From Basidiobolus meristosporus CBS 931.73 (Eukaryota; Fungi; Basidiobolomycota), in NCBI GenBank assembly GCA_002104905.1, contig MCFE01000211.1, forward strand, positions 1 through 64,000: DNA of 64,000 nt, written 5' to 3'. The notes beneath the pieces were generated by a model that searched no databases, was not told the DNA's origin, and was given only the letters and a program-made list of their open reading frames with translations. A program made the translations under genes and the position numbers. Numbering within the stretch: the first letter of the stretch is position 1; each line of letters starts with the position of its first letter. Below are positions 1-31,608 of this stretch, in pieces.

Positions 1-688
1 GTTATTTCAATATCTTACATGTAATTTGTATTCTTCAATCCGTGAGGTAAAAGCAGCAAAATCACCTAACTTTATAATTGGCTATGGTCAGGAGAGTGGC
101 AGTATTGCGGACTTCTATCTTTTGACTAATACTTTTTGCAACCAAACTTAAATTTAAAATTTGCGGAGTTTGGAACTAGATATATCAAATCAATAGATGT
201 TGGCCTAGTGGAACCGACTAAATCGTCCAATAAATGATCTTTCGGAATATCAGGTTTCTCATGAGCCGATTAATTTAATCACCTAGTCGACTATAATATT
301 GATATGCAATTTGCCCATTTCTCAATAACAATGTCTTATCTGAAATAGCGCTATTGTTTAGCAAAGATCAAGATCAAGTAGAAACAAAGTAGACATGTAT
401 ATTAAGCTGGTCAATCAAGTGAATCGTAGTAACATATGATACAAACTCAAGTTGAGCAGCAAATACTCATCACCTGCCGATCACCGCAAATCCCTAATAT
501 CAAATGGGTTGACGACTAGTGTTTTCAGGTACGAGAACTTGTCTATCAATGAGAAGTTTACGCCAAATAACAAAGAGCCTCTATAGTAAGGAAGATGGTT
601 TTGACGACATGTCTATCTGCACTGTATAAATAGAAGCATTTCTGTGTACGGTTAGCCACAGTTGTCAGAACATACTCGCCTGGCAATA

Positions 689-6268: not shown

Positions 6269-6358
6269 TTATGCATGCATAATGGGGGGTTCGTTTTTAA
6301 AAATTCTGGCATATTTATTACTCAGTATCCAGAGCCAAATAGCTCATTCATCCGTTGC

Positions 6359-7422
6359 TCAGCACCCCGAGCCTAATTTGATATCCCAAAATTGAGTGTG
6401 AGCACTGAAACCAAGTGGGATTGCAACCCCGACGATACAGTTTTGGTCCTCGGCTACTTTCCCGTTAACCACATCGGTGCAAACTACGGTGTTACCGTCT
6501 TTACGGATGTATACCTCATGAGGGTGTTGGAAATAATCTAGATTTTGAGGAGGGAGCCTTGAGACTGGATCATTTTTGTTGGTGATTCTTGTCAATCTCG
6601 ATTGAGTGCTGTTCAGCCCGAATGTATCATACACCAATTGAGCGAATTCCTTGTTGCCAGTCCTGGGTTGGCCGTAGGTATGTAGGTAAATTTGTGAGCG
6701 ATCGATAATCAGAAGATCCGATTGGAAGGATCTTCCACTCATGGGATTCAAATAGAACCTCTTGATGTCCATAGCACAAAAGGCCGCCACTGCTCCTCCC
6801 TGATTGGACTGTTGAATGGATGACTCGTTGAATGTGTATTATGCTGAACTTACCAGAGAGTGGCCAGTGATTACTAATTTGTATGATTCAGTCTGATCCT
6901 TCAGAGTTGTCAGCACCTGCTTAAGCCCAGCTCTGACTGTGCTCTCGACACTTGCGTAAGTCTCATAGAATCCGCTGTGTACTTTGACTTTGTCATTTGC
7001 AGTGGGGTAAACGAACGCTGTAGGAGTAACTCCCAAATTCTTAATCCAGTTAGCCAGATTTGAGGATCTAAAGAGGGAATTCGAGTTAGATCAAATGACT
7101 ACCTCAATGGGCGGTATATTTACCCTCGGAATGAGATAACGATCTTTTTGTCTTCCTTGCTATAGCCGATGTATCCTGCAATGCCCGAAGCCCCGCTGGA
7201 GAAGTAAGTGGTAACATTCAATTTCCCAACACAGCGTTCCCCGCATGTCCAGTTGGTCAATTTTTCCTGTGGGCAGTACGCAGCAGAAGCGTATTTAGCA
7301 TGAGTTTTGAGGATGGCCAGCTCTGAGCTCTCAAGTACTGGTAGACTTTGACGCCGAGTGATTGGACTGGCTAGAGTGGTATAGCTTAGCGCCAATACAA
7401 TGAACAATCTGAGCCAATTCAT
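6359..7422 (-). CDS. Secreted class-3 (fungal) triacylglycerol lipase, 3 exons
   Basis: Signal peptide, YASAAYC, IVISFRG, nucleophile elbow GHSL|GG split by a GTAAGT intron, TYGQPRTGN, RITNKNDPVSRLP, HPHEVYI, C-terminal His. Confidence 0.93.
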
Positions 7423-13052: not shown

Positions 13053-14246
13053 TTACAAGTGGATCAGGATATCGGGCAAGCAAACCACTGCATCGACCTT
13101 GATGCCAAGTATGTTCGCGTGTGCTTTGATTGTCTCGCAGTACTCTCTACGTCTACCCTCAACATCTTTGCCAAGACTCACATCGTTAATCACTCCGCCG
13201 ATGAGTCTTTTAGGGCTATTGTCACCTCCATGCACGTTGAGATCGACCTTGATGAGGTTGCCAAGACACACTACTGCATCAGCATCAATCCCCAGCAGTT
13301 GACGAACCTTGACTGCAATATCTTCACACCGGCTAACGTCTGAGCCATTCCACTCCTCATCTTGGCCTGTATGGTCGTCAGAAGTATTCGATACATCGGG
13401 GATACTAGGCGAGCCGCGAGTTAGATCCTCAGTCACTCCAGCTGGACTCCCTATTCTATCTGATCCTTTTGACCCATTAATCGACTTGTCCCCCGGTAGT
13501 CCTCCAGCAATATTCTTGACCGTGTCCCCGACCTTGTCACTTGCAGGCCCACTTGGTAATCCATTGTGAGGTCTGGATGTGCCACCAGCACCCAATCCAA
13601 TGCAGATGTTCGCATTGATGCCGAGGAGGTCGGCTTTTGCATCCACAAGGTTTCCATGACATCTATCATTGCCCGATAGATTTGTCTCATCTCCTGACGG
13701 CTGACCACCTGGCTTAGAGGTGTCGTTGTTTGCTGGTGTACCACTGGCATCGCCATCAGTGGAGTGGCTGCCACCCTCATTGTCGTTGGTCAGGTCACCA
13801 TCACCACCAGCTGGCGATCCAGTGTGTGATGGTTGCTCTGGATGGTCAGTCTTCTTGTCATCCCTCTGACCCTCTCCCTTCCTATTATCACCATCATCCC
13901 CTCTGATCCCTCCATTCCTATCTTCAGTGTACTCCCAATCCTCGTCACCATTGTCTGACCCATGCCTGTATCTATCGTCGGAATGCTCGCGTTGATACTC
14001 ACCTCGACGGTGTGAGTCGTACACGAGATTGCCATCAAACCTGTCACTGTGGCGGTAGTCTCTCTCATCCCTGTAGTCAACATCCCGATATCTTTCTCCC
14101 TGGCGGTCATAATCACTCCTGTCATTTCTTGGTCCGTGGCGATCACCTTCCTCAGCAAGAGAGTAATCTCTCTCAGCTACACTAGCAGCTGATATTAGCG
14201 AAGCAGCAGAAAGAATGAACAACAACTGGTACGAGGTAAAATGCAT
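13053..14246 (-). CDS. Secreted Cys-motif repeat protein, array copy 1 (397 aa)
   Basis: Signal peptide, D/R/Y-rich region, G/S/D/N linker, three C..L[LI]GI..C motifs; intronless. Confidence 0.9.
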   Translation of the reverse strand: MHFTSYQLLFILSAASLISAASVAERDYSLAEEGDRHGPRNDRSDYDRQGERYRDVDYRDERDYRHSDRFDGNLVYDSHRRGEYQREHSDDRYRHGSDNGDEDWEYTEDRNGGIRGDDGDNRKGEGQRDDKKTDHPEQPSHTGSPAGGDGDLTNDNEGGSHSTDGDASGTPANNDTSKPGGQPSGDETNLSGNDRCHGNLVDAKADLLGINANICIGLGAGGTSRPHNGLPSGPASDKVGDTVKNIAGGLPGDKSINGSKGSDRIGSPAGVTEDLTRGSPSIPDVSNTSDDHTGQDEEWNGSDVSRCEDIAVKVRQLLGIDADAVVCLGNLIKVDLNVHGGDNSPKRLIGGVINDVSLGKDVEGRRREYCETIKAHANILGIKVDAVVCLPDILIHL

Positions 14247-15025
14247 CGGTGGATGAAGGTTGGATTCTATCTTTAGTTACACACACAAGTTGGCTTTTTA
14301 GCAAGTTAATATCTATACGAAGAGAGAACTAGGGAGAGTACTTGTGCTGAATATTGGCATATAAATCTATCCTTTTTATAGCAATTATAGAATGTGCATT
14401 AACGCATTATCAAATCGGGACAAACTCGTGAAAATGGAGTCATAGTCCTTGATACATCTCCGATATCTTACTCATTTCTTGCGAAATCCTGCTTTCATAT
14501 TTATATTCAAGGGAGCACGCCCTCCAGGTTGTGAAATAAGATAATACGTTTTGATACATAATGATTATGATCCTGGCTTGTTACTTGTTGATCGAAGCTG
14601 AGCAGACGAATTTATGTACTACTTCGCTGGCCACCACATTCAATATCAATATTGTTTTGGCCTCACTAACTCAATATACAAGTGTTGACAACTGTTATTC
14701 AATCAAGTACTGGAAGCAAGTAATTCAATGTTATTAGGTCACCGACTCCTAAAATATATAGTTTATTGGATATATCCGTATTTTGAGAAGCAGGTAAATA
14801 TTACAGTCCTTGGGATACAATAACTTTATGCCTGAGCATCATAGGGCGTAATCTCTATACGATCCATTTTCTCAAATGCCTATGTAAATATTTGAGATGT
14901 CAGAATCGTGGTTATTTGCTCATACATCAGTCAACAGTTTATTAGACACTTTTCATTTGGAATGACAGGTATACATTTCGGAGGTGGGGATACAATAACT
15001 CTAGGCGGAAATGAATACCCAGGTA

Positions 15026-16216
15026 TTACAAGTGGATCAGGATATCGGGCAAGCAAACCACTGCATCTACCTTGATGCCAAGTATGCTCGCATGTGCTTT
15101 GATTGTCTCGCAGTACTCTTTACGTCTACCCTCAACATCTTTGCCAAGGCTCACATTGTCAATCACTCCGCCGATGAGTCTTTTAGGGCTATTGTCACCT
15201 CCATGCACGTTGAGATCGACCTTGATGAGGTTGCCAAGACACACTACTGCATCAGCATCAATCCCCAGCAGTTGACGAACCTTGACTGCAATGTCTTCAC
15301 ACCGGCTAACGTCTGAGCCATTCCACTCCCCATCCTGGCCTGTATGGTCGCCAGAAGTATTCGATACATCGGGGATACTAGGCGAGCCGCGATTTAGGTC
15401 CTCGGTCACTCCAGCAGGGCTACCTGGTCCATCCGATCCCTTTGACCCATTGATTGACCTGTCCATTGGTAGTCCTCCAACAATGTTCTTGACCGTGTCC
15501 CCGACCTTGTCACTTGCAGGCCCACTTGGTAATCCATCGTGAGGTCTGGATGTGCCACCAGCACCCAATCCAATGCAGATGTCCGCATTGATGCCGAGGA
15601 GGTCGGCTTTTGCATCCACAAGGTTTCCATGACATCTATCATTGCCCGATAGATTTGTCTCATCTCCTGACGGCTGACCACCTGGCTTGGAGGTGTCGTT
15701 GTTTGCTGGTGTACCACCGGCATCACCATCAGTGGAGTGGCTGCCACCCTCATTGTCATTGGTCAGGTCACCATCACCACCAGCTGGTGATCCAGTGTGT
15801 GGTGACTGCTCTGAGTGACCGGTCTTGTTGTCATCCCTTTGGCCCTCTTCATTTCTACCTTGATCTTTACCATCACTTCTTCTATAGCTGTCATCAGTGT
15901 ACTCCCAATCCTCATCCCCATTGCCTGGTCCATGTCTGTAATTATCCCCGGAGTGCTCATGTTGATACTCACCTCGGCGGTGTGAGTCGTATTCGAGATC
16001 ATCATCAAACCTGCCACTATGGCGGTAGTCTCTCTCATCCCTGTAGTCAACATCCCGATATCTTCCTCCCTGACGGTCATAGTCCCTCCAGTCATCTCTT
16101 GGCCCGTAGCGGTCACCCTCATTTGCAGGTGAGTAATCCCTCTCAGCAACACTAGCGGCTGAGATTACCGAAGCAGCAGAGAGAATGAACAACAACTGGT
16201 ATGAGGTGAAATGCAT
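15026..16216 (-). CDS. Secreted Cys-motif repeat protein, array copy 2 (396 aa)
   Basis: Paralogue of copy 1 with the same architecture. Confidence 0.9.
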   Translation of the reverse strand: MHFTSYQLLFILSAASVISAASVAERDYSPANEGDRYGPRDDWRDYDRQGGRYRDVDYRDERDYRHSGRFDDDLEYDSHRRGEYQHEHSGDNYRHGPGNGDEDWEYTDDSYRRSDGKDQGRNEEGQRDDNKTGHSEQSPHTGSPAGGDGDLTNDNEGGSHSTDGDAGGTPANNDTSKPGGQPSGDETNLSGNDRCHGNLVDAKADLLGINADICIGLGAGGTSRPHDGLPSGPASDKVGDTVKNIVGGLPMDRSINGSKGSDGPGSPAGVTEDLNRGSPSIPDVSNTSGDHTGQDGEWNGSDVSRCEDIAVKVRQLLGIDADAVVCLGNLIKVDLNVHGGDNSPKRLIGGVIDNVSLGKDVEGRRKEYCETIKAHASILGIKVDAVVCLPDILIHL

Positions 16217-16853
16217 CTGTATATGAAATTTTGGATTCTAACTGCAAGCTCTTTGTGGAATTAGCGTCTTTTAGGTAAGCGAATATCTAAATGGGGAAGA
16301 TAAAGATTTGTTGAGTCTTGTACTGATTCTTAACATGGTTCTCTTATTATATAGCGAATTTAGAGCTGCGCGTTTACGCAACGTCGATTCGGGGTTAAAT
16401 CATAGAAAAATTATGGTCCATTGAAACTCTCCGATAAATCGCTCGGCTATTACATTGACCTACTGCTATGGTTTACTGCGGGACTGTCAGTATACAATGG
16501 GAAAAGTATAAGAGTCCCGCAACATAAATTTGTGCACTAAACTCGACATCGTTATTCGAAGTAAAATACACCATATACTGATAAAATTTGAAGTGCATGC
16601 GCGCCTGATTTGGCAAACAAATTCTTGGAAACTTATTTGGTAAATGGCCGACTCCTTACCATCTTATTGTTATTAGCGTTGCCACTATGGCTTTTATGGT
16701 CAGATGACCAAAGCCCCATGTAAGATTATAGAGTATAAGAAATATCTTATAAATTGGTCAATTGTTTATTCGATGGATCATTATTCTGAGAAGCGGGTAT
16801 ATGTTGCTGTTGTAAGGATACAATATTTTTAAGTGGGAATGAATATTCGGGAA

Positions 16854-18044
16854 TTACAAGTGGATCAGGATATCGGGCAAGCAAACCACTGCATCTACCT
16901 TGATGCCAAGTATGCTCGCATGTGCTTTGATTGTCTCGCAGTACTCTCTACGTCTACCCTCAACATCTTTGCCAAGGCTCACATTGTCAATCACTCCGCC
17001 GATGAGTCTTTTAGGGCCATTGTCACCTCCATGCACGTTGAGATCGACCTTGATGAGATTGCCAAGACACACTACTGCATCAGCATCAATCCCCAGCAGT
17101 TGACGAACCTTGACTGCAATATCTTCACACCGGCTAACGTCTGAGCCATTCCACTCCCCATCCTGGCCTGTATGGTCGCCAGAAGTATTCGATACATCGG
17201 GGATACTAGGCGAGCCGCGATTTAGGTCCTCGGTCACTCCAGCAGGGCTACCTGGTCCATCCGATCCCTTTGACCCATTGATTGACTTGTTCATTGGTAG
17301 TCCTCCAGCAATATTCTTGACCGTGTCCCCGACCTTGTCACTTGCAGGCCCACTTGGTAATCCATCGTGAGGTCTGGATGTGCCACCAGCACCGAATCCA
17401 ATGCAGATGTCCGCATTGATGCCGAGGAGGTCGACCTTTCCATCCACAAGGTTTCCATGGCATCTATCATTGCCCGATAGATTTGTCTCATCTCCTGACG
17501 GCTGACCACCTGGCTTGGAGGTGTCGTTGTTTGCTGGTGTACCACTGGCATCACCATCAGTGGAGTGGCTGCCACCCTCATTGTCCTTGGTCAGGTCACC
17601 ATCACCACCAGCTGGTGATCCAGTGTGTGGTGGTTGCTCTGAATGGTCAGTCTTGCTGTCATTCCACTGGCCCTCTTCATTTCTCCCTTGGTTTTTGTCA
17701 TCATTTCTTCCATACCTGTCATCAGTGTACTCCCAATCCTCGTCACCATCGTCTGACCCATGTCTGTACCTATCCCCAGAGTGCTCACGTTGATACTCAC
17801 CTCGGCGGTGTGAGTCGTATTCGAGATCATCATCAAACCTGTCACTGTTACGGTAGTCTCTCTCATCGCTGTAGTCAACATCCCGATATCTTCCTCCCTG
17901 GCGGTTATAATCACTCCAGTCATTTCTTGGTCCATAGCGGTCACCCTCGTTTGCAGGAGAGTAATCTCTCTCAGCAACACTAGCAGCTGAGATTACTGAA
18001 GCAGCAGAGAGAGTTAACAGCAACCGATATGAAGAGAAATGCAT
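16854..18044 (-). CDS. Secreted Cys-motif repeat protein, array copy 3 (396 aa)
   Basis: Paralogue of copy 1 with the same architecture. Confidence 0.9.
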   Translation of the reverse strand: MHFSSYRLLLTLSAASVISAASVAERDYSPANEGDRYGPRNDWSDYNRQGGRYRDVDYSDERDYRNSDRFDDDLEYDSHRRGEYQREHSGDRYRHGSDDGDEDWEYTDDRYGRNDDKNQGRNEEGQWNDSKTDHSEQPPHTGSPAGGDGDLTKDNEGGSHSTDGDASGTPANNDTSKPGGQPSGDETNLSGNDRCHGNLVDGKVDLLGINADICIGFGAGGTSRPHDGLPSGPASDKVGDTVKNIAGGLPMNKSINGSKGSDGPGSPAGVTEDLNRGSPSIPDVSNTSGDHTGQDGEWNGSDVSRCEDIAVKVRQLLGIDADAVVCLGNLIKVDLNVHGGDNGPKRLIGGVIDNVSLGKDVEGRRREYCETIKAHASILGIKVDAVVCLPDILIHL

Positions 18045-18755
18045 TGGTGGGTAAAGCCTGGATTTTCACTGCTGTGATACTCTGAAATTAGCGTTCCTGG
18101 TGAAAAATCTCTATCAAGGGAAGAGACAGCTTTGATGACTTAAGTATTGAATTTCAACAAAGTTCTCCGCATTATATAGCAAGTCTTGGCCTGCGCGTTA
18201 ATGTAAGGTCAAATCGGGATTTATTCGTGAAAATGATACTATAAATGATGCTAAATCTCCCATTGCTTGCCCAATTATTGCAACATATCGAGGAATGAGC
18301 TTTTTGTTAAAGCACTGTTCTTCTCTCGTGACTATAATGTGAAAGGCACGTTCTAACATGGAAAGTTGTGTTTCTCCATTTACGTGCTGGCTATCGAATA
18401 AGCTCAAGTAATGCCTTCACTGTAACGCAACATCCCAGACTTATCCATGCCATGTTGGATTCTGGAGATATGTTAATTAAATGGGAATCGAATTTTCACT
18501 TACTATAAAAATGAATATTATCCAAAGTTGTACTATTGTAATTAGTGTTTAAACTGGTCTGGTGTCCGTAGCTTTAAAAGCAAAATATATAGTCCAAAGA
18601 GATGCCAATGGATATCCAGAAATAGGTATCAAGCTTACGAATTGGAGAGATATTTATTCCATGTGTTATAAAGAAAACTGAAGGGTATACAAAGTGGTGA
18701 ATGCATCGCCGTAACTCTAGTCTAAGCGTGGCAACTGGATGTAGGTAAAATAGTG

Positions 18756-19952
18756 CTACAAGTGGATTAGGATATCTGGCAAACAAACCACTGCATCTAC
18801 CTTGATGCCAAGTATGTTCGCATGTGCTTTGATTATCTCGCAGTACTCTCTATGTCTACCCTCAACATCTTTGCCAAGACCCACATTGTCAATCACTCCG
18901 CCGATGAGTCTTTTAGGGCCACTGTCACCTCCATGCACGTTGAGATCGACCTTGATGAGGTTGCCGAGACACACTACTGCATCAGCATCAATCCCCAGCA
19001 GTTGACGAACCTTGACTGCAATGTCTTCACACCGGCTGACGTCTAAGCCACTCCACTCCCCGTCCTGGCCTGTATGACTGCCGGAAGTATTCGATACATC
19101 AGGAACACCTGTCGAGCCGTGAGTTAGATCCTCAGTCACTCCAGCTAGACTCCCTGTTCTATCTGATCCTTTTGACCCGTTGATCGATTTGTCCCCTGGT
19201 AGTCCTCCAGCAATATTCTTGACCGTGTCCCCGACCTTTTCACTTGCAGGCCCACTTGGTAATCCATCGTGAGGTCTGGATGTGCCGCCAGCACCCAATC
19301 CAATGCAGATGTCCGCATTGATGCCGAGGAGGTCGACCTTTCCATCCACAAGGTTTCCATGACATCTATCATTGCCCGATAGATTTGTCTCATCTCCTGT
19401 CGGCTGACCACCTGGCTTAGAGGTGTCGTTGTTTGCTGGTGTACCACCGGCATCGCCATCAGTGGAGTGGCTGCCACCCTCATTGTCGTTGGTCAGGTCA
19501 CCATCACCACCAGCTGGTGATCCAGTGTGTGGATGTTGCTCTGAATGGTCAGTCTTGCTACCATCCCTCTGGCCCTCTCTCTTGCTATCATCATCACCAT
19601 CATCTCCTCTGATCCCTCTATTCCTGTCTTCAATGTACTCCCAGTCTTCGTCACCATTGTCTGACCCATGTCTGTACCTATCCACGAAGTGCTCACGTTG
19701 ATACTCACCTCGGCGGTGTGAGTCGTACTCGAGATTGTCATCAAACCTGTCACTGTGGCGGTAGTCTCTCTCATCCCTGTAGTCAACATCCTGATATCTT
19801 TCTCCCTGACGGTCATAATCACTCCAGTCATTTCTTGGTCCATAGCGGTCACCCTCGTTTGCAGGAGAGTAATCTCTCTCAGCAACACTAGCAGCTGAGA
19901 TTACCGAAGCAGCAGAGAGAATGAACAACAACTGGTATGAGGTGAAATGCAT
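18756..19952 (-). CDS. Secreted Cys-motif repeat protein, array copy 4 (398 aa)
   Basis: Paralogue of copy 1 with the same architecture. Confidence 0.9.
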   Translation of the reverse strand: MHFTSYQLLFILSAASVISAASVAERDYSPANEGDRYGPRNDWSDYDRQGERYQDVDYRDERDYRHSDRFDDNLEYDSHRRGEYQREHFVDRYRHGSDNGDEDWEYIEDRNRGIRGDDGDDDSKREGQRDGSKTDHSEQHPHTGSPAGGDGDLTNDNEGGSHSTDGDAGGTPANNDTSKPGGQPTGDETNLSGNDRCHGNLVDGKVDLLGINADICIGLGAGGTSRPHDGLPSGPASEKVGDTVKNIAGGLPGDKSINGSKGSDRTGSLAGVTEDLTHGSTGVPDVSNTSGSHTGQDGEWSGLDVSRCEDIAVKVRQLLGIDADAVVCLGNLIKVDLNVHGGDSGPKRLIGGVIDNVGLGKDVEGRHREYCEIIKAHANILGIKVDAVVCLPDILIHL

Positions 19953-20612
19953 CCGAGAGTATAAGTTGTTCGCTAATTACAGGTATGCTTCACGGCGGAT
20001 GTCTACTAAGATCTACTTAGAAATGATAAGAATCTGATGAATGTTGGTCACTTGCAGAAATTCCGCACTTTTTATAGCAACAGTGTTATGCACCATGGTG
20101 CAAGGTTTGATCGGGACTAGATAGCAATGATTCAACCACAATTCAGAATAAATCTCCATTATCCTGCACATTCATTGTATATTACTGCTGCTAGAACTCA
20201 TAAGAACCACACGTGTAAAATTGAAGTCTCTTCATAGTAAGTCAAAGAATGAACTTGGAAGAATGCTTAAATACAATGGAATATATATACCTTTATTCTG
20301 CCGACACTGAAGTAAATAAATCGATGATGCGATTATAGTAATAATTGGTTACTACTTTGCCAGATGCTGTTATTTATATTTGCTATCGCCTACAGCACTC
20401 ATTCCCCCGGTAGCTATAGGTTGTAGCATCACGAGGTATTTCGAAACATGAGCGATTTTCTCGGATACTGATGTATATATTTGAGATGTCAGAAACGTAG
20501 TTATTCGATTATATATCTGTTAGCAGTTTATTAGATGCTTATCCTTTAGTAGGATGGGTATTTGTTGCGGTAGTGGAATTCAATAACTCTAAGCGGGAAT
20601 GAACATCAGGTA

Positions 20613-21803
20613 CTACAAGTGAATCAGGATATCGGGCAAGCAAACCACTGCATCTACCTTGATGCCAAGTATGTTCGCGTGTGCTTTGATTGTCTCGCAG
20701 TACTCTCTACGTCTACCCTCAACATCTTTGCCAAGACCCACATTGTCAATCACTCCGCCGATGAGTCCTTTATGGCCATTGTCACCTCCACGCACATTGA
20801 GATCGACCTTGATGAGATTGCCAAGACACACTACTGCATCAGCATCAATCCCCAGCAGTTGACGAACCTTGACTGCAATATCTTCACACCGGCTAACGTC
20901 TGAGCCATTCCACTCCTCATCCTGGCCTGTATGGTCGTCAGAAGTATTCGATACATCGGGGATACTAGGCGAGCCGCGATTTAGGTCCTCGGTCACTCCA
21001 GCAGGGCTACCTGGTCCATCCGATCCCTTTGGCCCATTGATCGACCCATCCCCTGGTAGTACTCCAGCAATATTCTTGACCGTGTCCCCGACCTTGTCAC
21101 TTGCAGGCCCACTTGGTAATCCATCGTGAGGTCTGGATGTGCCACCAGCACCGAATCCAATGCAGATGTCCGCATTGATGCCGAGGAGGTCGACCTTTCC
21201 ATCCACAAGGTTTCCATGACATCTATCATTGCCCGATAGATTTGCCTCATCTCCTGTCGGCTGACCACCTGGCTTGGAGGCGTCGTTGTTTGACGGTGTG
21301 CTACTGGTACCACCACCAGTGGAGTGGCTGCCACCCTCATTGTCCTTGGTCAGGTCACCATCACCACCAGCTGGTGATCCGGTGCGTGGTAGTTGCTCTG
21401 AATGGTCAGTCTTGATGTCATTCCTCTGGCCCTCTTCATTTCTCCCTTGGTTTTTGTCATCATTTCTTCCATACCTGTCATCAGTGTACTCCCAATCCTC
21501 GTCACCATTGTCTGACCCATGTCTGTACCTATCGTCGGAGTGTTCGCGTTGATACTCACCTCGGCGGTGTGAGTCGTACTCGAGATCGTCATCATACCTG
21601 TCACTGTTACGGTAGTCTCTCTCATCCCTGTAGTCAGCATCCCGATATCTTCCTCCCTGGCGGTCATAATCACTCCAGTCATTTCTTGGTCCGTAGCGAT
21701 CACCCTCGTTTGCAGGTGAGTAATCCCTCTCAGCAACGCTAGCACCTGAGATTACCGAAGCAGCAGAGAGAATGAACAGCAACTGATACGAGGAGAAATG
21801 CAT
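20613..21803 (-). CDS. Secreted Cys-motif repeat protein, array copy 5 (396 aa)
   Basis: Paralogue of copy 1 with the same architecture. Confidence 0.9.
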   Translation of the reverse strand: MHFSSYQLLFILSAASVISGASVAERDYSPANEGDRYGPRNDWSDYDRQGGRYRDADYRDERDYRNSDRYDDDLEYDSHRRGEYQREHSDDRYRHGSDNGDEDWEYTDDRYGRNDDKNQGRNEEGQRNDIKTDHSEQLPRTGSPAGGDGDLTKDNEGGSHSTGGGTSSTPSNNDASKPGGQPTGDEANLSGNDRCHGNLVDGKVDLLGINADICIGFGAGGTSRPHDGLPSGPASDKVGDTVKNIAGVLPGDGSINGPKGSDGPGSPAGVTEDLNRGSPSIPDVSNTSDDHTGQDEEWNGSDVSRCEDIAVKVRQLLGIDADAVVCLGNLIKVDLNVRGGDNGHKGLIGGVIDNVGLGKDVEGRRREYCETIKAHANILGIKVDAVVCLPDILIHL

Positions 21804-22424
21804 TTTAGGGCTAAGACCGGATTGTAACTAGCAAATACTTTCTAGAATTGAGGTCTGTTGAGCTGATAAATCACTTTAAAGAGAAGTGAACTTTTGAAAT
21901 TTTGGTGCTCATCCCCTCCATGGTAATTCTAATTTTATAGTGAACCCTCATATGCACATTGACGCTAGGTCAGATCGGGGGTTATTCATATAAATGATAT
22001 TTTTAGTCTACTTTAATTTCCTATATTCTGCTCAGACATCGTACTGTTCGGATGCATTACCTCATTATTGTGGATCTACACTTCACCAAAGGTTGAACAA
22101 ATACACACACGATCTGTTGAAAGTCTGGAGATAAATATTCATGAGAAAACAATATGGTATTCATTACTTTACCAATCAATTAAATGCACATGATAAATTG
22201 CTAGATCGCGGCATTCTTTTTGTTTGATACTGTCTAGCATTTCCGACTGTAGCATTATCTTATATTCTGCCATTTTTCAAACACCAATAGAAGAGTACAC
22301 AACGTTAAAAAAAGTCGTCTTGTAATTGATTCCGTTTATTATTTAGAGTCCGATCATTCAGAGGGATGGGTATTCATTTCGAGGGGGGGTATAATAACTC
22401 TAGGCGGGAATGAACACCCAGGTA

Positions 22425-23618
22425 TTACAAGTGGATCAGGATATCGGGCAAGCAAACCACTGCATCTACCTTGATGCCAAGTATGTTCGCGTGTGCTTTG
22501 ATTGTCTCGCAGTACTCTCTACGTCTACCCTCAACATCTTTGCCAAGGCTCACATTGTCAATCACTCCACCAATAAGTCTTTTAGGGCTATTGTCACCTC
22601 CATGCACGTTGAGATCGACCTTGATGAGATTGCCAAGACACACTACTGCATCAGCATCAATCCCCAGCAGTTGACGAACCTTGACTGCAATATCTTCACA
22701 CCGGCTAACGTCTGAGCCATTCCACTCCCCATCCTGGCCTGTATGGTCGCCAGAAGTATTCGATACATCGGGGATACTAGGCGAGCCGCGATTTAGGTCC
22801 TCGGTCACTCCAGCAGGGCTACCTGGTCCATCCGATCCCTTTGACCCATTGATTGACTTGTCCATTGGTAGTCCTCCAGCAATGTTCTTGACCGTGTCCC
22901 CGACCTTGTCACTTGCAGGCCCACTTGGTAGTCCATCGTGAGGTCTGGATGTGCCACCAGCACCCAATCCAATGCAAATGTCCGCATTGATGCCGAGGAG
23001 GTCGACCTTTCCATCCACAAGGTTTCCATGACATCTATCATTGCCCGATAGATTTGTCTCATCTCCTGATGGCTGACCACCTAGCTTGGAGGTGTCGTTG
23101 TTTGACGGTGTGCCACTGGCATCACCATCAGTGGAGTGGCTGCCACCCTCATTGTCATTGGTCAGGTCACCATCACCACCAGCTGGTGATGCAGTGTGTG
23201 GTGGTTGCTCTGAATGGTCAGTCTTGTTGCTATCCCTCTGATCCTCGCCCTTCATATCATCAGCATCAATTCCTCTGATCCCTCCATCCCTATCTTCAGT
23301 GTACTCCCATTCCTCGTCACCATTGCCTGACCCATGTCTGTACCTATCCCCGAAGTGCTCACGTTGATACTCACCTCGGCGGTGTGAGTCGTACTCGAGA
23401 TCGTCATCAAACCTGTCACTGTGGCGGTAGTCTCTCTCATCCCTGTAGTCAACATCCTGATATCTTCCTTCCTGACGGTCATAATCCGTCCAGCCATTTC
23501 TTGGTCGGTAGTGGTCACCCTCCTCAACAAGAGAGTAATCTCTCTCAGCAACACTAGCAGCTGAGATTACCGAAGCAGCAGAGAGAATGAACAACAACTG
23601 GTATGAGGTGAAATGCAT
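22425..23618 (-). CDS. Secreted Cys-motif repeat protein, array copy 6 (397 aa)
   Basis: Paralogue of copy 1 with the same architecture. Confidence 0.9.
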   Translation of the reverse strand: MHFTSYQLLFILSAASVISAASVAERDYSLVEEGDHYRPRNGWTDYDRQEGRYQDVDYRDERDYRHSDRFDDDLEYDSHRRGEYQREHFGDRYRHGSGNGDEEWEYTEDRDGGIRGIDADDMKGEDQRDSNKTDHSEQPPHTASPAGGDGDLTNDNEGGSHSTDGDASGTPSNNDTSKLGGQPSGDETNLSGNDRCHGNLVDGKVDLLGINADICIGLGAGGTSRPHDGLPSGPASDKVGDTVKNIAGGLPMDKSINGSKGSDGPGSPAGVTEDLNRGSPSIPDVSNTSGDHTGQDGEWNGSDVSRCEDIAVKVRQLLGIDADAVVCLGNLIKVDLNVHGGDNSPKRLIGGVIDNVSLGKDVEGRRREYCETIKAHANILGIKVDAVVCLPDILIHL

Positions 23619-24251
23619 CCGAGAGTATAAGTTGTGCGCTAATTATAGGTAAGCTCTAAAGTGAATATCTACCAAAATCTGTCTAGAGAAGATATGAATC
23701 TGATGAATGTTCGTCACTTACAGGAATCCCACACCTTTTATAGCAACAGTGTTATGCACCATGGTGCAAGGTTTGATCGGAATGAGCTAGTAGAGATTAA
23801 ACGACAATCCAGTATAATTCTCCTTTACCCAGCTCAATCATTATAGTTTGCTGTTTCTACAATTCATAGTAAACATATGCGTCTCGTCAACATGTGAAAA
23901 AAGGCATTTGATATCGATTCAATGAATGATTTAGAAGAATATTTGACTACCCCGAACTATAAAGGGCTGCCATTTTTTGGCATTTTGATCATTTGACGCA
24001 TGCCTTAATTTGAGTAATAACTGGTTACTACTTTGTTGAGTACTTTCTTGTATATTTTAAACTACCAGTAGCACCCATTTCTATAGCAGTTACAAGGTGT
24101 ATTATCTATACGGGCTTTTTTCCCAGTAGCCTATGTACATATTTGAGATGTCAGAATCGTAGTTATTCGTTTATATATCTGTCAGCAGTTTATTGGATGC
24201 TTATCGTTTAGAATGACGGGTATACATTTCGGAGGTGGGGATACAATAACT

Positions 24252-25458
24252 CTAGGCGGAAATGAATAACAAGTGGATCAGGATATCGGGCAAGCAAACC
24301 ACTGCATCTACCTTGATACCAAGTATGTTCGCGTGTGCTTTGATTGTCTCGCAGTACTCTCTACGTCTACCCTCAACATCTTTGCCAAGGCTCACATTGT
24401 CAATCACTCCGCCGATGAGTCCTTTATGGCCATTGTCACCTCCATGCACGTTGAGATCGACCTTGATGAGGTTGCCAAGACACACTACTGCATCAGCATC
24501 AATCCCCAGCAGTTGACGAACCTTGACTGCAATGCCCTCACATCGGCCAGCCTCAGATCCAGTCCAGTCACTGATCTGGCCCGTATTGTCACCGGAAGTA
24601 TTCGACCCATCAGGAATGCTAGGTGAGCCGCGGGTTAGGTCTTCGGACACTCCAGCTGGACTTCCTTGTCCATCTGATCCTTTTGACCCATTGATCAGCT
24701 TGTTCCCCGGTAGTCCACCAGCAATATTCTTGACTGTATCCCCGACCTTGTCACTTGCAGGCCCACTTGGTAATCCATCGTGAGGTCTGGATGTGCCACC
24801 AGCACCCAATCCAATGCAGATGTCCGCATTGATGCCGAGGAGGTCGACCTTTCCATCCACAAGGTTTCCATGACATCTATCATTGCCCAATAGATTTGTC
24901 TCATCTCCTGATGGCTGACCACCTGGCTTGGATGTGTCGTTGTTTGACGGTGTACCACCGGCATCATCACCAATGGAGTGACTGCCACCCTCATTGTCGT
25001 TGGTCAGGTCACCATCACCACCAGCTGGTGATCCAGTGCGTGGTAGTTGCTCTGAATGGTCAGTCTTGCTGTCATCCCTCCGGCCTCCGCCCTTCATATC
25101 ATCACCATCATCTCTTATCCCTCCATTCCTATCTTCAATGTACTCCCAGTCCTCGTCGCCATTGTCTGGCTCATGTCTGTATCTATCGTCAGAGTGCTCA
25201 CGTTGATACTCACCTCGGCGATATGATTCGTACTCGAGATCGATCATCAAACCTGTCACTGTGGCGGTAGTGTCTCTCATCCCTGTAGTCAACATCCCGA
25301 TATCTTCCTTCCTGACGGTCATAATCCCCCCAGTTATTTCTTGGTCCGTAGCGGTCATTTTGATTTGCAGGTGAATAATTTCTCTCAGCGACACTAGCTC
25401 CTGATATTACCGAAGCAGCTGAGAGAATGAATAGCAACCGGTATGAGGTGAAATGCAT
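24252..25458 (-). pseudogene. Array copy 7, frameshifted and missing its native stop
   Basis: ATG at 25458. Extra A at 25243 (tcgAtcatcaa vs tcgtcatcaa in copy 6) shifts the frame after ..DRFDD. A 10-bp deletion (cccaggtatt) relative to copies 2 and 8 removes the TAA, so the C-terminal frame ends IHLLFISA. Confidence 0.8.
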
Positions 25459-26103
25459 CTCTAAGTATAAGCTAGGTTCTAACTGTAATTGCACTCTGGA
25501 ATTGATGTTTCTTTGGCGGACAAGATCCTATCTATTTGGAGCAGAGAGAGTTTTGATGAGTTCTACTGATTCGATCATGAATCTTTCCATTTTATAATGA
25601 ACTTTCAGCTGCGCATAAACGCTAGATCAGGCCGGAGAAAATTCTTGTAAATGACAATAGATATTATATTAAGTCTCCTATATCTTATCGTGCTATCCTA
25701 ACAGGTTACCTTTTCATTGTGGTTCCACGCTCCGCCCATAATTCAGCATAAGTATACACATTCCAACCAAAAATGGGAAATACAAATCAATGAGAAATCA
25801 CCGCTAAGTAGTTGTTGCCTCATCTGTGTAAATATACACGTAAAAGTGTTTGGACTACCCATTCAATCATTCATGATAGTGTCTTGCATCGCTTTTTGTA
25901 TTATTAACATACCTTGGATAATTCGGTGAGTGGACTTCCACGAGACAACACAATATAGTGAGTAACCAGCTCATAAATCACAAAATAGTGGATAAACTTA
26001 TAAGTTGGTCAGTAGTTTATTTGATGCTTATCATTTAGAATGTTGGGTATACATTTCGGAAGTGGGGATACAATAACTCTAGGCGGAAATGAATACCCAG
26101 GTA

Positions 26104-27294
26104 TTACAAGTGGATCAGGATATCGGGCAAGCAAACCACTGCATCTACCTTGATGCCAAGTATGCTCGCATGTGCTTTGATTGTCTCGCAATACTCTCTA
26201 CGTCTACCCTCAACATCTTTGCCAAGGCTCACATTGTCAATCACTCCGCCGATGAGTCCTTTAGGGCCATTGTCACCTCCACGCACGTTGAGATCAACCT
26301 TGATGAGATTGCCAAGACACACTACTGCATCAGCATCAATCCCCAGCAGTTGACGAACCTTGACTGCAATGCCCTCACATCGGCCAGCCTCAGATCCAGT
26401 CCAGTCACTGACCTGGCCCGTATTGTCACCGGAAGTATTCGACCCATCAGGAATGCTAGGTGAGCCGCGGGTTAGGTCTTCGGTCACTCCAGCTGGACTT
26501 CCTTGTCCATCCGATCCTTTTGACCCATTGATCGACTTGCCCCCTGGTAGTCCTTCAGCAATATTCTTGACTGTATCCCCGACCTTGTCACTTGCAGGCC
26601 CACTTGGTAATCCATCGTGAGGTCTGGATGTGCCACCAGCACCCAATCCAATGCAGATGTCCGCATTGATGCCGAGGAGGTCGACTTTTCCATCCACAAG
26701 GTTTCCATGACATCTATCATTGCTCGATAGATTTGTCTCATCTCCTGATGGCTGACCACCTGGCTTAGAGGTGTCGTTTTTTGCTGGTGTGCCACTGGCA
26801 TCACCATCAGTGGAGTGACTGCCACCCTCATTGTCGTTGGTCAGGTCACCATCACCACCAGCTGGCGATCCAGTATGTGGAAGTTGCTCTGAATGGTCAG
26901 TCTTGCTGTCATCCCTCCGGCCCTCGCCATTCATATCATCACTATCATCTCTTATCCCTCCATACTTGTCATCAGTGTACTCCCAGTCTTCGTCACCATT
27001 GCCTGGCCCATATCTGTACCTACCCCCGTAGTGTTCGCGTTGATACTCACCTCGGCGATGTGAGTCGTACTCGAGATCGTCATCCAACCTGTCACTGTGG
27101 CGGTAGTCTCTCTCATCCCTGTAGTCAACATCCCGATATCTTTCTCCCTGGCGGTCATAATCACTCCAGTCATTTCTTGGTCCATGTCTATTACCCTCAT
27201 AGGCGGGGAAGTAATCTCTCTCAGCAACACTAGCGCCTGATATAACAGAGGCTGCGGAAATCAGAAATAACAACTTGAATGAAGTGAGATGCAT
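26104..27294 (-). CDS. Secreted Cys-motif repeat protein, array copy 8 (396 aa from MHLTSF)
   Basis: Paralogue. ATG 27294 aligns with the other copies; the upstream in-frame ATG at 27354 is probably not used. Confidence 0.88.
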   Translation of the reverse strand: MHLTSFKLLFLISAASVISGASVAERDYFPAYEGNRHGPRNDWSDYDRQGERYRDVDYRDERDYRHSDRLDDDLEYDSHRRGEYQREHYGGRYRYGPGNGDEDWEYTDDKYGGIRDDSDDMNGEGRRDDSKTDHSEQLPHTGSPAGGDGDLTNDNEGGSHSTDGDASGTPAKNDTSKPGGQPSGDETNLSSNDRCHGNLVDGKVDLLGINADICIGLGAGGTSRPHDGLPSGPASDKVGDTVKNIAEGLPGGKSINGSKGSDGQGSPAGVTEDLTRGSPSIPDGSNTSGDNTGQVSDWTGSEAGRCEGIAVKVRQLLGIDADAVVCLGNLIKVDLNVRGGDNGPKGLIGGVIDNVSLGKDVEGRRREYCETIKAHASILGIKVDAVVCLPDILIHL

Positions 27295-27868
27295 TGAGAA
27301 ATAATCTTGTTGGCAATTCTTTGGAATGTAGCTGGTATAAAACACTTTGTCCAAGGACTGATGATATTGACATATGGTATTGAAGTAGCCATTTTATATT
27401 TCTTCATGAGCGCCGCCCAGGAGATTTCCAAGCACTGATGCTTCCCATACAAATTTTTCCAGGTGGAAAATACTGCAAGGGTATTGTTCATAGATAACTT
27501 GGCACGTGTAAATACAGTAAAGTCGCTATAATGAACCGTTTTTTACACTCATTCCAGCATTATCACAATATTTCCGAACACTGTGAAGCGGATTGTATTT
27601 TATGTCACCTACTATTATACGGCTTGTTGATTGCCTTTACTACAATGAAATGAGTAAACAATAGAATTGCGCCGTAGGAAACAGAATTCTAAATTTTCCC
27701 CACTTTTATTAGATGGCGTTAATCTCTAAGCCACTTGGTAGGAATAAAGTGGGATTTCTGGCTGATGGCATAGCTATTTTGAAATCGTATCCAAGCCATG
27801 TGGTCTGAGCTCAGCTGTATGAATGTATCATCAAAGTATTGCTGTGAATCCGGCATGTACTACTCAGT

Positions 27869-29571
27869 TCAGACAAATAGGTTATCGACATAGCGAACCA
27901 GTTCCCTAGTTAAGCTTACATGCCCGTCGGGATTTTCCGCAATATGGACTGTTCTCAAACGACGGCACTTCTCAAGGAAGTCCTTGACCTCATTGTCGGA
28001 TATGCACTGGTTTTCCGTGAAACTGAGCACTTCCAAACTCTCGGTCGAGGTTTTGGCCAGCATCTGGAACAGCATGTTGTTAATAGGCAATCCGTCTACT
28101 TTTAACTCCCGCAGTCTCCCTCCTTGTCTTCTCAAAAACACGCCAGCAAACACCATAGGATCCAAGTATGGAGAGCCATAAATCAAAGAAAGATCAAGAA
28201 CCTCCAACGCCTTGCAAAAAGTCAAGACTGAGTTGATTCCGTATTCATTGATCTCGGTTTGGCTGAGGTTGAGAATTCGCAGGTCTTTGCCGATCCTCTT
28301 CACCAGTTGCGTGACCGATGCTGTGTCCAAGGTGGTGTTGTGTGCAGAGAATTCAACTAGCTGGGTACAGCAAGCCCCTATCAGGTCCCCCAAGCCATCT
28401 GGTAACATCCCGTCTTCAATATGTAGATGAGTCAGCTGGCCTCCGAAATTCTTCAAAGCCACTTCCCAGAACTCAATAGGTGGTGGGTCGTAGTTCGCTA
28501 ATCTGCGGAATGTGACCTTGCGCAGTGCAGGGAGTTCTTTTAACTCTGCAGTGACAAACTCTTTGCGAAGGTCTATTCCTGATATCAGTAGATCCTGCAA
28601 TTGATCCGACTGAGTATTTAATATATCAATCACTTGCCCCGGGCTTAATACGCAGCTCTTGTCCAACTCCAAATGGAATTTTTGGAATTTAAACGATTCT
28701 CTCTGTTTGAAGAACTCCACGAGAAGCTCGGGTGAATCAGCGATCTTTCCAAGCTCCAAGTATTTCACCGAATCCGGCAGAGTATATTGTAGCGATGGGA
28801 TGAAAGCTATCTTGGTTGCTGACTTTACAGTTATACTCTCCGCATTGGGCACACGCTTAATGAACGAGCAAATCACTTCCTCAGGAATACACTCGCCAAC
28901 CAGGCTGAAATCTCTAAGCTTATCTAGGTTGGGTAAATTTTCTAGCAAGTGCAAGCTACTCAAATCAACATCCTCGGCTTCTATCACAACACCCAAGGAT
29001 TCAATCGTCTTAGCAGAGTTTAGTAGCTGGACGAGCTTCAAGATATGCTCGCTTCCGAGCTGCACCTTTAGGTACCGAAATTCTTTGATGTTGGCCAGAT
29101 TATTTGCAATTCCGTCCTGTATGATGGTATCTATGGGTACGCTCATATCGGCGGAGGTTCGGAAGGAAATAAGGGAATCCAGGTATACAAGTGATTCGGA
29201 TAGCTCGGCTACCACACAACTCTTATATTCGGTCAAATCCAGAGCTGTTACAAGTGAAGCAACTATCAGGAGCGACGGCAAAGAGGGAATGGTTTAAGGC
29301 AAGTTTCTCTGTTTAGGAGGATATCCGCTAGAAAGAAACTACATAGGATGGTCTTACGTTCTTTGTTCTCCTCTATTATGCTCCTAAACTGCTCACATTC
29401 GCGTCTCGTAGTGAATCTTGGGGCGTTCCATAATAGTGGCTTAGCAAGCTCATACCATTTCCTATTTACAAGCAAACAGCTATGTAACGTCGGTAAATGT
29501 GCTTTCTCCAGATATTTGAAGAGCAGTGTCAAAGTGGTATCGTTCAGGTGTGTGTCTTCGTATTGTGGCAT
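27869..29571 (-). CDS. F-box-like / RNI-type leucine-rich repeat protein, 2 exons
   Basis: LFKYL..LHSCLLVNRKWYELAKPLLW F-box-like motif. Intron 29263-29357 gives EENKELASLVTALDL. C-terminal LRRs (LRILNLSQTEI, LEVLDLS, LRELKV). Confidence 0.85.
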
Positions 29572-29837: not shown

Positions 29838-31608
29838 CTAGAAAAGAAATTTCTGTAGTGTGTTAAATATACGTGACACCGCCCCCGATTTTACTAGATA
29901 ATCGGAACCAGTCTCCAGCTTCTGCTCGAAGATCTCCCCGAGTTTCCTGTCAATCGAGGAGAGCGCGTCGTCGAGCTGACGGTCGGCGGTTTTATTGACA
30001 TGGCTTGGTGTATATTCGTATGTTTGCAAGCATGAGTTTAGACTTGGGTCCAAGTAGAACTTCTTCTCCCAAGGATAGCATGCAGGCAGTTGGTACGGAT
30101 CCTCTCCTGCGTTAGTATTTGTTAGGAAGGTGGGATGAGGTGAATAGGCAATCGCATTCCAATCGATGTTTCTAAATAGAGGCTGCTCTTTGATGGAGGT
30201 GATATTCAAACGTCTCTGGACATCAAAAATTAGCAAGTGCTCCAGGAAATCTATGAGCTCCGGCTCGAAGTAGGGTGGATATTTTTTTGGGATTTCATAT
30301 ACAGATTGATCCGACTTGGTCTCAATAAAGAAGGGAGCAAAGTCATCTCCTTGGGCCGCTACACTCTGAGGGTTGTTGGCAGCATACGCCTGCATATACA
30401 TCCAGTACACCGTGGCACCCACGCTGAACCAGTCAGCAGAGGTGCGTGGGTGTTGGTAATCATCCGTATACACCTCAGGGGCAGTGGCGACTTCGTTAAA
30501 CACTATGACATCGCTCCAAAGATCGCCATGAATCGGTTGAACCCCGCCATAATCAATTAGCTTGATATGATCACGGTGCACTCTGTCGGTGAACATCAGG
30601 TTATTGGGCTTTATATCACCATGGACGGCCCCGGTGATCGTATGGAAATCATCCACTGCCTGAACAAACTGGGCCACCAGCTTGCGAAGCTGACCGTTGG
30701 ATAGCCCGCGGAAAGCGTTCGTGCGACTGATGTCTTCTCCAGCTAGATACTCGTAAAACACGAACGGGATCCCATCGTCCTCTTGTCCATGGCACCACAT
30801 GCCGGCGATATACGGCGAGGTCTCTTTAGCAGCCAGCAGCGTGTACATAATCTCCATCTCCATATGATAACAATGCATCTCTTCTTTATCCGTTACATTG
30901 AAGCGCTTCTTGATGAATTCCTTGCCACTATCCCGGTGTCGCATCCTCTCGATAGCACGGCGGCAATATTTCTGCGTACATATGTTCTCAGTAACCGTCT
31001 CAAACTCCTCACTGATACATCCGGGAAGGAAGCGGCCAACATTCTAAGGCAGGTGAGGATGATTTAGTTGCGAGTTATGATCACACAAGCTTCTGATGCA
31101 CGGCAATTACCTCGTATATTTCATTCATGGTACCGTCCACATCGAGCGTATTGTCCGAATCTTCCGAGTCGTCCAGGCCGAATTCCTCCGGATGATCCTT
31201 GAGCTGCATAGCCAACTTTTGCTCCCAATCGGAACCCAGATTCCCGCCGGGATTCTTCTCCAGAATCTTGACCATCAGTCGCCTTTCCCGTGAACTCAAG
31301 TCATTCCACAGCTTGGTACTCTCTTCATCGAACTCCTCCAGTATCGACCGAGCACGGCGCGATTGCTGCTGTGGATTCAGGGACAGCGAGTTTGGTTGGA
31401 GTAGAAGCTGGTCAATCGGGTTGGAGTCGCCATATAGATGGGGAGGTTGACTGAGTGGGGAATCTGTCCAACCGAGGTTCACTTGAGAAAACAGTGGGTC
31501 CTGAAGTGGTTTATCAAGGCCCGGTATATCCACATCCAATAGATCGCCACTTCCGATCAAGCCAAGAAGAACGATCGCTTGGGAGAACACTGGGACCCAG
31601 CAAAGCAT
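29838..31608 (-). CDS. Ser/Thr protein kinase-like protein with N-terminal signal peptide (567 aa, 2 exons)
   Basis: Intron 31044-31110 (GTAATT..CTAAAT..TAG) joins ORF 31081-31608 in frame to ORF 29838-30944. Motifs: FIKK, EMEI, YEYLAGEDI, HGDIKPNN, DYG, TAPE, DWFSVG. Confidence 0.85.

Follow-up and report, generated by a model that had tools for sequence, protein, structure and literature searches.

What is made by eight related genes that stand head to tail in the genome of the fungus Basidiobolus meristosporus CBS 931.73, and why were so many of them kept? The question is raised by the first 64,000 nucleotides of contig MCFE01000211.1 (assembly GCA_002104905.1, forward strand), referred to here as the window, which contains an array of eight homologous, intronless open reading frames (ORFs) on the minus strand between positions 13053 and 27294. 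Species of Basidiobolus live in the guts of amphibians and reptiles, occasionally infect humans, and form ballistic conidia as well as adhesive capilliconidia; their surface and matrix proteins are so far essentially uncharacterised. A first-pass annotation, made from the sequence, proposed that the array encodes an unrecognised family of secreted proteins forming a surface coat analogous to hydrophobins. We found that the array is a distinct subfamily of an undescribed superfamily of predicted secretory-pathway proteins, which is restricted to Basidiobolus and is built on a C-x18/19-C module.

The layout of the array agrees with the ~1.86-kb period given in the first-pass annotation: start-to-start spacings are 1970, 1828, 1908, 1851, 1815, 1840, and 1836 bp, with a mean of 1864 bp (coordinates are given in Table 1). 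The count of eight ~397-residue copies had to be corrected, since only seven ORFs run uninterrupted from ATG to stop and code for proteins of 396-398 amino acids. In the alignment, proteins of the other copies were 79-89% identical to that of copy 1. Copy 7 retains its ATG (25458) and signal-peptide codons, but one extra base at ~25242 shifts the frame and leads to a premature stop about ten codons further on, as seen in the DNA alignment. Its usual stop codon is gone as well, and the frame is extended by five codons. The tblastn program splits this copy into segments 25458-25243 and 25241-24270, and a 380-residue ORF with a GTG start in the ORF list is the downstream part of copy 7 with a false start. 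A TTG start at 27354, proposed for copy 8, was rejected as an artefact of ORF calling, and the ATG at 27294 was used instead.

Coding regions differ by 2-17% between copies, and the spacers of 620-780 bp are only ~60% alike (shuffled sequences, used as a control, are 51% identical). In Logan contigs from two DNA runs, the spacers and flank were covered ~180-280-fold, i.e., at single-copy depth, and coding stretches common to several copies summed up to 1200-1600-fold. Because the coding sequences are distinct, the spacers diverged, and the spacer depth that of single-copy DNA, the eight copies are separate loci and not an assembly artefact. No alternative or indel variant of the extra base in copy 7 was present among the Logan contigs of the two runs; these contigs probably come from the assembled sample itself and are not independent support for the array or the insertion. 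A Tandem Repeats Finder scan of the 10-30 kb region reported nothing, the array period being above the 500-bp limit of the tool. At position 24089, in the spacer between copies 6 and 7, one base of the assembly is missing from the contigs of both DNA runs, which may be an assembly error or a polymorphism.

Every copy encodes, in this order, a signal-peptide-like N-terminus, an acidic block, a linker, module 1, a 90-residue linker, module 2, a 32-residue linker, and module 3. This is the architecture described in the first-pass annotation, including linkers rich in Gly, Ser, Asp, and Asn (we add Thr and Pro) and three motifs with two cysteines each. The acidic block has 113 residues in copy 6, which is used as a reference here, and contains 23 Asp, 17 Arg, 13 Glu, 12 Gly, and 10 Tyr in degenerate [DER]-Y-x repeats. 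The mature N-terminus adjoining the predicted signal-peptide cut is kept in homologues from B. ranarum. There are six cysteines per protein (positions 196, 215, 307, 327, 370, and 389 of copy 6) and no CC doublet, with 18, 19, and 18 residues between the members of the three pairs. Ile, Val, and Leu abound in the modules, which contain no aromatic residues. The mature protein as a whole, with its 375 residues, has a pI of ~4.6 and a grand average of hydropathicity (GRAVY) of ~-1.0, and half of its residues are Gly, Ser, Asp, Asn, Thr, or Pro.

Structure prediction was consistent with a mostly disordered chain. AlphaFold2 run on the whole protein with ten sequences gave a mean predicted local distance difference test (pLDDT) score of 37, with 325 of 397 residues below 50. 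For modules 2 and 3, the prediction was a helix and then a short hairpin (pLDDT 60-69); when the two-module domain was run by itself with 14 diverse sequences, the secondary structure was unchanged and pLDDT averaged 49. The motifs had been called amphipathic, a description that was not borne out: hydrophobic moments of the modules, calculated for helix and strand, were mostly no higher than in shuffled sequences. Strand-type periodicity could be seen in modules 1 (p about 0.01) and 3 (p about 0.07), in the second half of each. Three further candidate features were rejected. A glycosylphosphatidylinositol (GPI) anchor was dismissed because the C-terminal hydrophobic stretch is only ~12 residues long and is broken by Asp and His. 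A GGDGD stretch is not a calcium-binding repeat of the RTX type, since Leu occupies a consensus Asp position. A carbohydrate-binding module was rejected for the lack of aromatic residues in the modules, which argues against sugar binding and for protein-protein contacts.

The relatives of the array protein define its place. A word-indexed search returned the window's own proteins and three B. ranarum proteins (37-40% identity) and nothing else, and a search with the N-terminal 140 residues returned the array's own proteins only. Modules 2 and 3 are nearly invariant between the two species despite an overall identity of 38-40%. The first-pass annotation had suggested a search with a profile of the motif. 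An exhaustive HMMER search of 1.84 billion protein representatives with a C-terminal profile (E ≤ 1e-3) yielded 12 matches, every one of them from B. ranarum or B. meristosporus CBS 931.73; with a second profile, based on multi-module members, nine proteins were matched in the same two species. All proteins matched carry between two and 14 copies of a module C-x18/19-C-[LI], whose core follows the pattern [IV]-x(3)-[LV]-x(2)-LG-[IL]-x-[VA]-[DN]-A-x-[VI]; the array copies, with three modules each, conform to it. The C-terminal profile, made from the array modules, matched up to ten stretches in multi-module Basidiobolus proteins. Every full-length member of the superfamily starts with a hydrophobic N-terminus.

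Small members of the superfamily (134-291 residues) consist of a polar N-terminal region and exactly two C-terminal modules, and because they are built of just this unit, modules 2 and 3 of the array protein appear to be the ancestral one. In other members, the modules are joined to extensin-like PPxYPP stretches and to tails rich in Gly, Tyr, and Asn. The module proteins ORX77975.1, ORX80994.1, and ORX93878.1 of B. meristosporus and KAK9704127.1 and KAK9719531.1 of B. ranarum, all annotated as hypothetical, share with the array protein the cysteine-bracketed module (profile E-values from 1e-6 to 1e-23) and the signal-peptide-like N-terminus. Paralogues on shared contigs (two sets) are a further likeness, as are the B. 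ranarum homologues of the array itself, at least two of which lie directly in tandem on a short contig (L002, JASJQH010008930.1). The array subfamily differs in having only three modules, set on linkers of 90 and 32 to 40 residues, and in its Asp/Arg/Tyr-rich N-terminal block, which is unique to it, and its close homologues occur only in B. ranarum. Beside one of the tandem homologues (P0004), positions 3245-4241 of the same contig code for the same signal peptide and acidic Tyr-rich block followed by repeats of the FPGRIPGG/LPGDLPNG type, with no cysteine modules; the contig ends within these repeats.

Searches outside the genus were negative at every level, in agreement with the first-pass view that the family is an unrecognised one. 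Pfam gave no match to separate modules, the C-terminal half, or the Asp/Arg/Tyr block even at E ≤ 10 (chance matches only), and NCBIfam gave only sub-threshold, probably chance matches. A PDB sequence-profile search with the two-module alignment produced no match at E ≤ 10. Foldseek comparison of the two-module model with AFDB clusters returned only meaningless matches with E ~1 and TM-scores below 0.5. No neighbour scored above 0.72 in a protein atlas feature search, in which scores below 0.9 are leads only. The two most conserved peptides were also searched as patterns in 185,579 bacterial and archaeal genomes; of the 308 matches, none belongs to a relative, and horizontal transfer from bacteria was rejected on this ground. 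Searches of the literature on Basidiobolus hydrophobins, secretome, proteome, and adhesives turned up no description of the module family.

We next consider how the copies have been maintained. Selection was measured as Nei-Gojobori ratios of nonsynonymous (dN) to synonymous (dS) divergence over all copy pairs. The ratios ranged from 0.25 to 0.61, with a mean of 0.32, and were 0.34 for the Asp/Arg/Tyr block and 0.27 for the C-terminal half. Thus, the copies are kept by purifying selection. The N-terminal block is indeed more variable than the remaining protein, as claimed earlier (dN of 0.116 vs 0.042), but at a similar dN/dS; positive selection on it was rejected on the ratio of 0.34. Nor can the array be called diversified, as it had been, given that dN/dS is ~0.3 everywhere and that gene conversion keeps the 3' 600 nt of the copies 89-98% identical.

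The evidence for gene conversion is a mosaic of similarities. Synonymous divergence between the copies is ~0.2, while the spacers are nearly randomised (~60% identity, vs 83-98% in coding regions). Copies 4 and 6 are 74% alike in their upstream regions and 91% alike in the 5' part of the coding region, and over its last 600 nt copy 6 matches copies 2 and 3 at 98% identity. By coding region, copy 7 groups with copy 8, and its downstream flank is similar to the one of copy 5. Since coding similarity is mosaic and the spacers are nearly randomised, we conclude that gene conversion confined to the coding region homogenises the copies. On a tree, the proteins form species-specific clades (support of 98/97 and 100/99) though B. 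ranarum also has tandem copies; such clades would result from concerted evolution, but also if the copies had multiplied separately in the two species.

Within the randomised spacers, putative promoter elements stand out. TATAAAA is present at -104 to -138 in six of the eight upstream regions, against 0.12 such 7-mers expected from shuffles, and copies 2 and 3 have TATATAA instead, so that all eight copies possess a TATA box. Upstream of it, ~150-175 nt 5' of the ATG, copies 1-7 share a conserved palindrome, TGCRY-N4-6-RYGCA, and a CCCGAT/TCCGAT motif (within 14247-27480), which together make a candidate site for a shared regulator. Copy 8, the transcriptionally most upstream one, has only the TATA box, at -104. 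Judged by these elements, the copies look like similarly regulated transcription units. Tandem amplification under purifying selection fits a need for dosage, a point on which the first-pass annotation holds.

What could such a protein do in bulk? Our preferred reading, which we hold tentatively and rate somewhat below an even chance, is that the array protein is a component of the extracellular matrix or surface that associates through its C-terminal modules and was amplified for dosage. The protein would be exported, and its ~300 acidic, disordered, and probably glycosylated residues would form a hydrated, negatively charged chain. The C-terminal modules, being stapled by disulfides and rich in Ile, Val, and Leu, would be unable to bury their hydrophobic residues alone; they may for this reason pair within or between molecules, so that chains would become tethered or cross-linked. 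Eight promoters of one type would supply the dosage for a bulk demand, for example on conidia, capilliconidia, or zygospores, or in gut passage. By analogy, a coat, adhesin, or matrix role appears the most plausible class, because relatives join the module to extensin-like, Gly/Tyr-rich, or elastin-like repeats; the strong conservation of the modules and their lack of aromatic residues lend further support to a matrix role.

Several observations weigh against this assignment. A search of sequencing runs with the array sequence found only runs labelled "DNA?", and no RNA run was shown to match. The signal peptide was called by eye only, and the predicted folds are of low confidence both for the whole protein and for the two-module domain. 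No wall-anchoring signal, whether a GPI-type tail or a Pir repeat, was recognised. The structural-type repeats that accompany the module occur in relatives and not in the array subfamily. Finally, B. ranarum homologues and all but one of the seven intact copies have a basic RR[RK] motif 3-4 residues ahead of module 3, which would fit proteolytic processing.

The last observation suggests a different role, in which the long acidic chain is a pro-region and Kex2-type cleavage after RR[RK], and possibly at other basic sites, frees a disulfide-stapled peptide of ~30 residues. The peptide might act as a signal, a pheromone-like factor, or a gut antimicrobial, and the array would raise its output, as in fungal Kex2-processed repeat proteins (KEPs) and animal peptide-precursor arrays. 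The basic site ahead of the first cysteine of module 3 recurs in B. ranarum proteins P0003, P0004, P0006, and P0015, the order of signal peptide, acidic region, basic site, and C-terminal cysteine peptide resembles that of peptide precursors, and alpha-factor precursors are among the weak atlas neighbours (score 0.56). A survey of KEPs (PMC7329392) names B. meristosporus as the KEP-richest fungus, with 43 KEPs, seven of which are of type S-3 with Tyr- and Asp-rich repeats. That seven intact array copies with a Tyr/Asp-rich block face seven S-3 KEPs is suggestive only.

The details of the sequence fit a precursor less well. KEPs have an endoplasmic reticulum signal peptide, which the conserved N-terminus of the array protein resembles by eye, and tandem repeats each parted by KR/RR sites. 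Clear repeats of this kind are missing from the array protein: it has two or three dibasic sites shared by copies, at ~80, 346 (four of seven copies), and 365 (six of seven), and these do not flank the modules regularly. Copy 4 has RHR at the critical site, distant relatives P0007, P0010, P0011, and P0012 have no basic site there, and multi-module relatives have none between modules. A pro-region of ~340 residues with two conserved modules would be an excessive carrier, and the freed peptide would be hydrophobic with a net negative charge, whereas antimicrobial peptides are typically cationic. We consider a Kex2-processed precursor unlikely.

The composition of the acidic block and the gene content of the window raise another possibility: the Tyr-rich block could be cross-linked in dityrosine fashion by a secreted oxidase, such as the nearby multicopper oxidase, or could bind Ca2+, hardening the wall of spores or zygospores, with the modules serving only as folding or targeting units. 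Ten Tyr per 113 residues in [DER]-Y-x contexts, a composition conserved in B. ranarum, the Gly/Tyr-rich tails of relatives, and the large multicopper oxidase gene in the same window would agree with such a function. The oxidase gene is, however, ~8 kb from the array and is separated from it by unrelated genes (lipases, ORC3, and a TRAPP subunit), and it is the modules, not the Tyr block, that are best conserved. As an account drawn from sequence features, it seems to us very improbable.

A third alternative stays closest to the original proposal. Here the cysteine modules would assemble into an interface-active, possibly amyloid layer, water-repellent or adhesive, on aerial structures or spores, taking the place of hydrophobins. 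The disulfide-closed modules have many Ile, Val, and Leu residues and are followed by strands of alternating polarity, and the periodicity in the second halves of modules 1 and 3 would suit such assembly. Hydrophobin clusters are among the weak atlas neighbours (scores of 0.54-0.56), values that, as noted, are leads only. The automatic UniRef name "Hydrophobin" is attached to five module relatives from B. meristosporus and B. ranarum (P0013, P0019, P0020, P0022, and P0023); these combine C-x18-C modules with extensin-like Pro-rich stretches, and P0013 and P0019 also have Gly/Tyr/Asn-rich tails. Hydrophobins are rare outside Dikarya. Zoopagomycota are poor in them (bioRxiv 10.1101/2022.08.19.504535).

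The protein itself does not look like a hydrophobin, as the first-pass annotation had recognised from its six cysteines without doublets. Neither hydrophobin model, PF01185 (class I) or PF06766 (class II), matched the whole protein or the scanned relatives (E ≤ 1) or the modules taken singly (E ≤ 10). The chaplin model PF03777 likewise matched neither the window protein (E ≤ 1) nor its isolated modules (E ≤ 10). P0013, the sole "Hydrophobin"-named relative scanned, gave no Pfam hydrophobin match either, and the UniRef names are probably unsupported automatic labels, an annotation artefact. The array protein lacks the eight-cysteine C-CC-C-C-CC-C pattern, and its mature form exceeds the ~70-150 residues of a small compact amphiphile. 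Being acidic, hydrophilic, and mostly disordered, with helical amphipathicity not above that of shuffles, it is the opposite of such a molecule, and the term "hydrophobin analogue" does not suit the intact protein. Thus, by descent the array protein belongs with neither hydrophobins nor chaplins nor repellents, and when intact it does not look like a surfactant; a hydrophobin- or chaplin-like coat formed by the modules appears quite improbable.

The matrix or surface component that we prefer can be placed in a wider scheme, in which a self-assembling extracellular material specific to Basidiobolus (such as an adhesive, spore coat, or matrix) would be constructed from the module and would have evolved independently of hydrophobins, chaplins, and repellents. 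The array would provide its bulk acidic component, pairing of modules would polymerise the chains, and the Tyr-rich block would allow oxidative hardening. We regard this scheme in its entirety as rather unlikely. The probability left over from the matrix reading and its three rivals falls to functions not yet imagined. What is new is the protein family and its 20-residue, disulfide-closed module, on which a genus-restricted superfamily of putative secreted proteins is built; as a genomic kind, a tandemly amplified, lineage-specific secreted protein is familiar. In the Basidiobolus lineage, the array offers a concrete candidate for the material that replaces hydrophobins or adhesins; alternatively, it may represent a novel class of processed peptides. 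Even if the function proves ordinary, the locus is a clean case of gene conversion limited to coding regions.

On one side, the neighbours of the array are genes for a TRAPP sybindin-type subunit and ORC3; on the other, they encode a leucine-rich repeat (LRR) protein and a protein kinase. Lipase genes and the multicopper oxidase gene are located further out. The two lipase genes (5190-7422) are placed between the multicopper oxidase and the array, and the class-3 lipase ORF at 7120-7422 begins with a signal-peptide-like sequence. The LRR protein has weak LRR_4 and F-box-associated LRR matches. The kinase, which the first-pass annotation had called "secreted-type", matches Pkinase with an E-value of 1.6e-23.

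Table 1. Coordinates of the array copies, sub-features of copy 6, and neighbouring genes in the window.
Feature	Position	Strand	Remarks
Copy 1	13053..14246	-	intact, 397 aa; ORF list and alignment
Copy 2	15026..16216	-	intact, 396 aa; ORF list and alignment
Copy 3	16854..18044	-	intact, 396 aa; ORF list and alignment
Copy 4	18756..19952	-	intact, 398 aa; RHR, not RRR, before module 3
Copy 5	20613..21803	-	intact, 396 aa; ORF list and alignment
Copy 6	22425..23618	-	intact, 397 aa; reference copy for sub-features
Copy 7	24252..25458	-	broken; frameshift, normal stop lost
Copy 8	26104..27294	-	intact, 396 aa; transcriptionally most upstream copy
Core promoter, copy 6	23619..23800	-	TATAAAA at -124; palindrome (TGCAC-CATG-GTGCA type) and CCGAT further upstream
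Signal-peptide-like N-terminus, copy 6, residues 1-22	23553..23618	-	by eye: hydrophobic core, small residues before predicted cut
Asp/Arg/Glu/Tyr-rich acidic block, copy 6, residues 23-135	23214..23552	-	net charge -17
Module 1, copy 6, C196-x18-C215	22971..23033	-	most degenerate of the three; low-confidence AlphaFold2 hairpin
Module 2, copy 6, C307-x19-C327 and next strand	22608..22700	-	AlphaFold2 helix and hairpin, pLDDT 60-69
Module 3, copy 6, C370-x18-C389 and hydrophobic C-terminus	22428..22511	-	RR[RK] ahead in 6/7 intact copies
Multicopper oxidase, large gene	662-4623	+	two long ORFs with Cu-oxidase_2 and Cu-oxidase_3 domains
GDSL lipase, secreted-type, with introns	ORFs 5190-5711, 5837-6268	-	
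Class-3 lipase, secreted-type, with introns	ORFs 6359-6790, 7120-7422	-	
Genes directly upstream of the array	27869-29281, 29838-30944	-, -	LRR protein and protein kinase

Two side observations concern individual copies. On the plus strand, ORFs at 15610-16155, 17483-17983, and 26781-27233 would encode His/Cys-rich products of 150-181 residues antisense to copies 2, 3, and 8; they sit opposite the N-terminal Asp/Arg/Tyr block and first linker. In all likelihood these ORFs are not genes and merely reflect a skewed codon composition on the sense strand. In another run (X3), which belongs to the same study as the main DNA runs and bears another organism label, a 207-nt contig equals the 5' end of copy 7 (25251-25457), and a 206-nt contig lies on the 3' end of copy 8 (26109-26313) with four differences. 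Both contigs have a depth of ~9-10; the run may hold RNA or DNA, from the same strain or a related one.

Comparison with known systems outside the genus sets the array protein apart. Hydrophobins are compact barrels of ~100 residues, whose eight cysteines include two CC doublets. Like them, the array protein is a predicted secreted fungal protein with conserved disulfides and hydrophobic stretches, encoded, as hydrophobins often are, in multiple copies; it differs in carrying its six cysteines in three separate x18/19 loops and in being acidic and hydrophilic. In the chaplins of Streptomyces (PF03777), too, a protein contains one or more short hydrophobic domains, and in the short chaplins the domain has a single disulfide. 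Module 1 (C-x-G-N-x-V-D ... L-L ... N-A ... C) loosely resembles the chaplin motif, which is a lead and not a test. Unlike chaplins, the array protein is predicted to form a helix and hairpin, and the pattern scan of bacterial and archaeal genomes turned up no relative. CBM14 peritrophins and hevein-type CBM18 proteins are also secreted and present disulfide modules beaded on linkers rich in Pro, Gly, Ser, and Thr, but their modules have six to eight cysteines and conserved chitin-binding aromatics, whereas the Basidiobolus module has two cysteines and no conserved aromatics. With the repellent Rep1 of Ustilago maydis and the KEPs (PMC7329392), the array protein shares lineage restriction, a possible Kex2 site, and a possible surface role, and its N-terminus resembles their signal peptide. 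Those proteins consist of numerous nearly identical repeats with Kex2 sites on either side; the array protein has one conserved basic site, absent in copy 4, and the unit that it repeats is the cysteine module.

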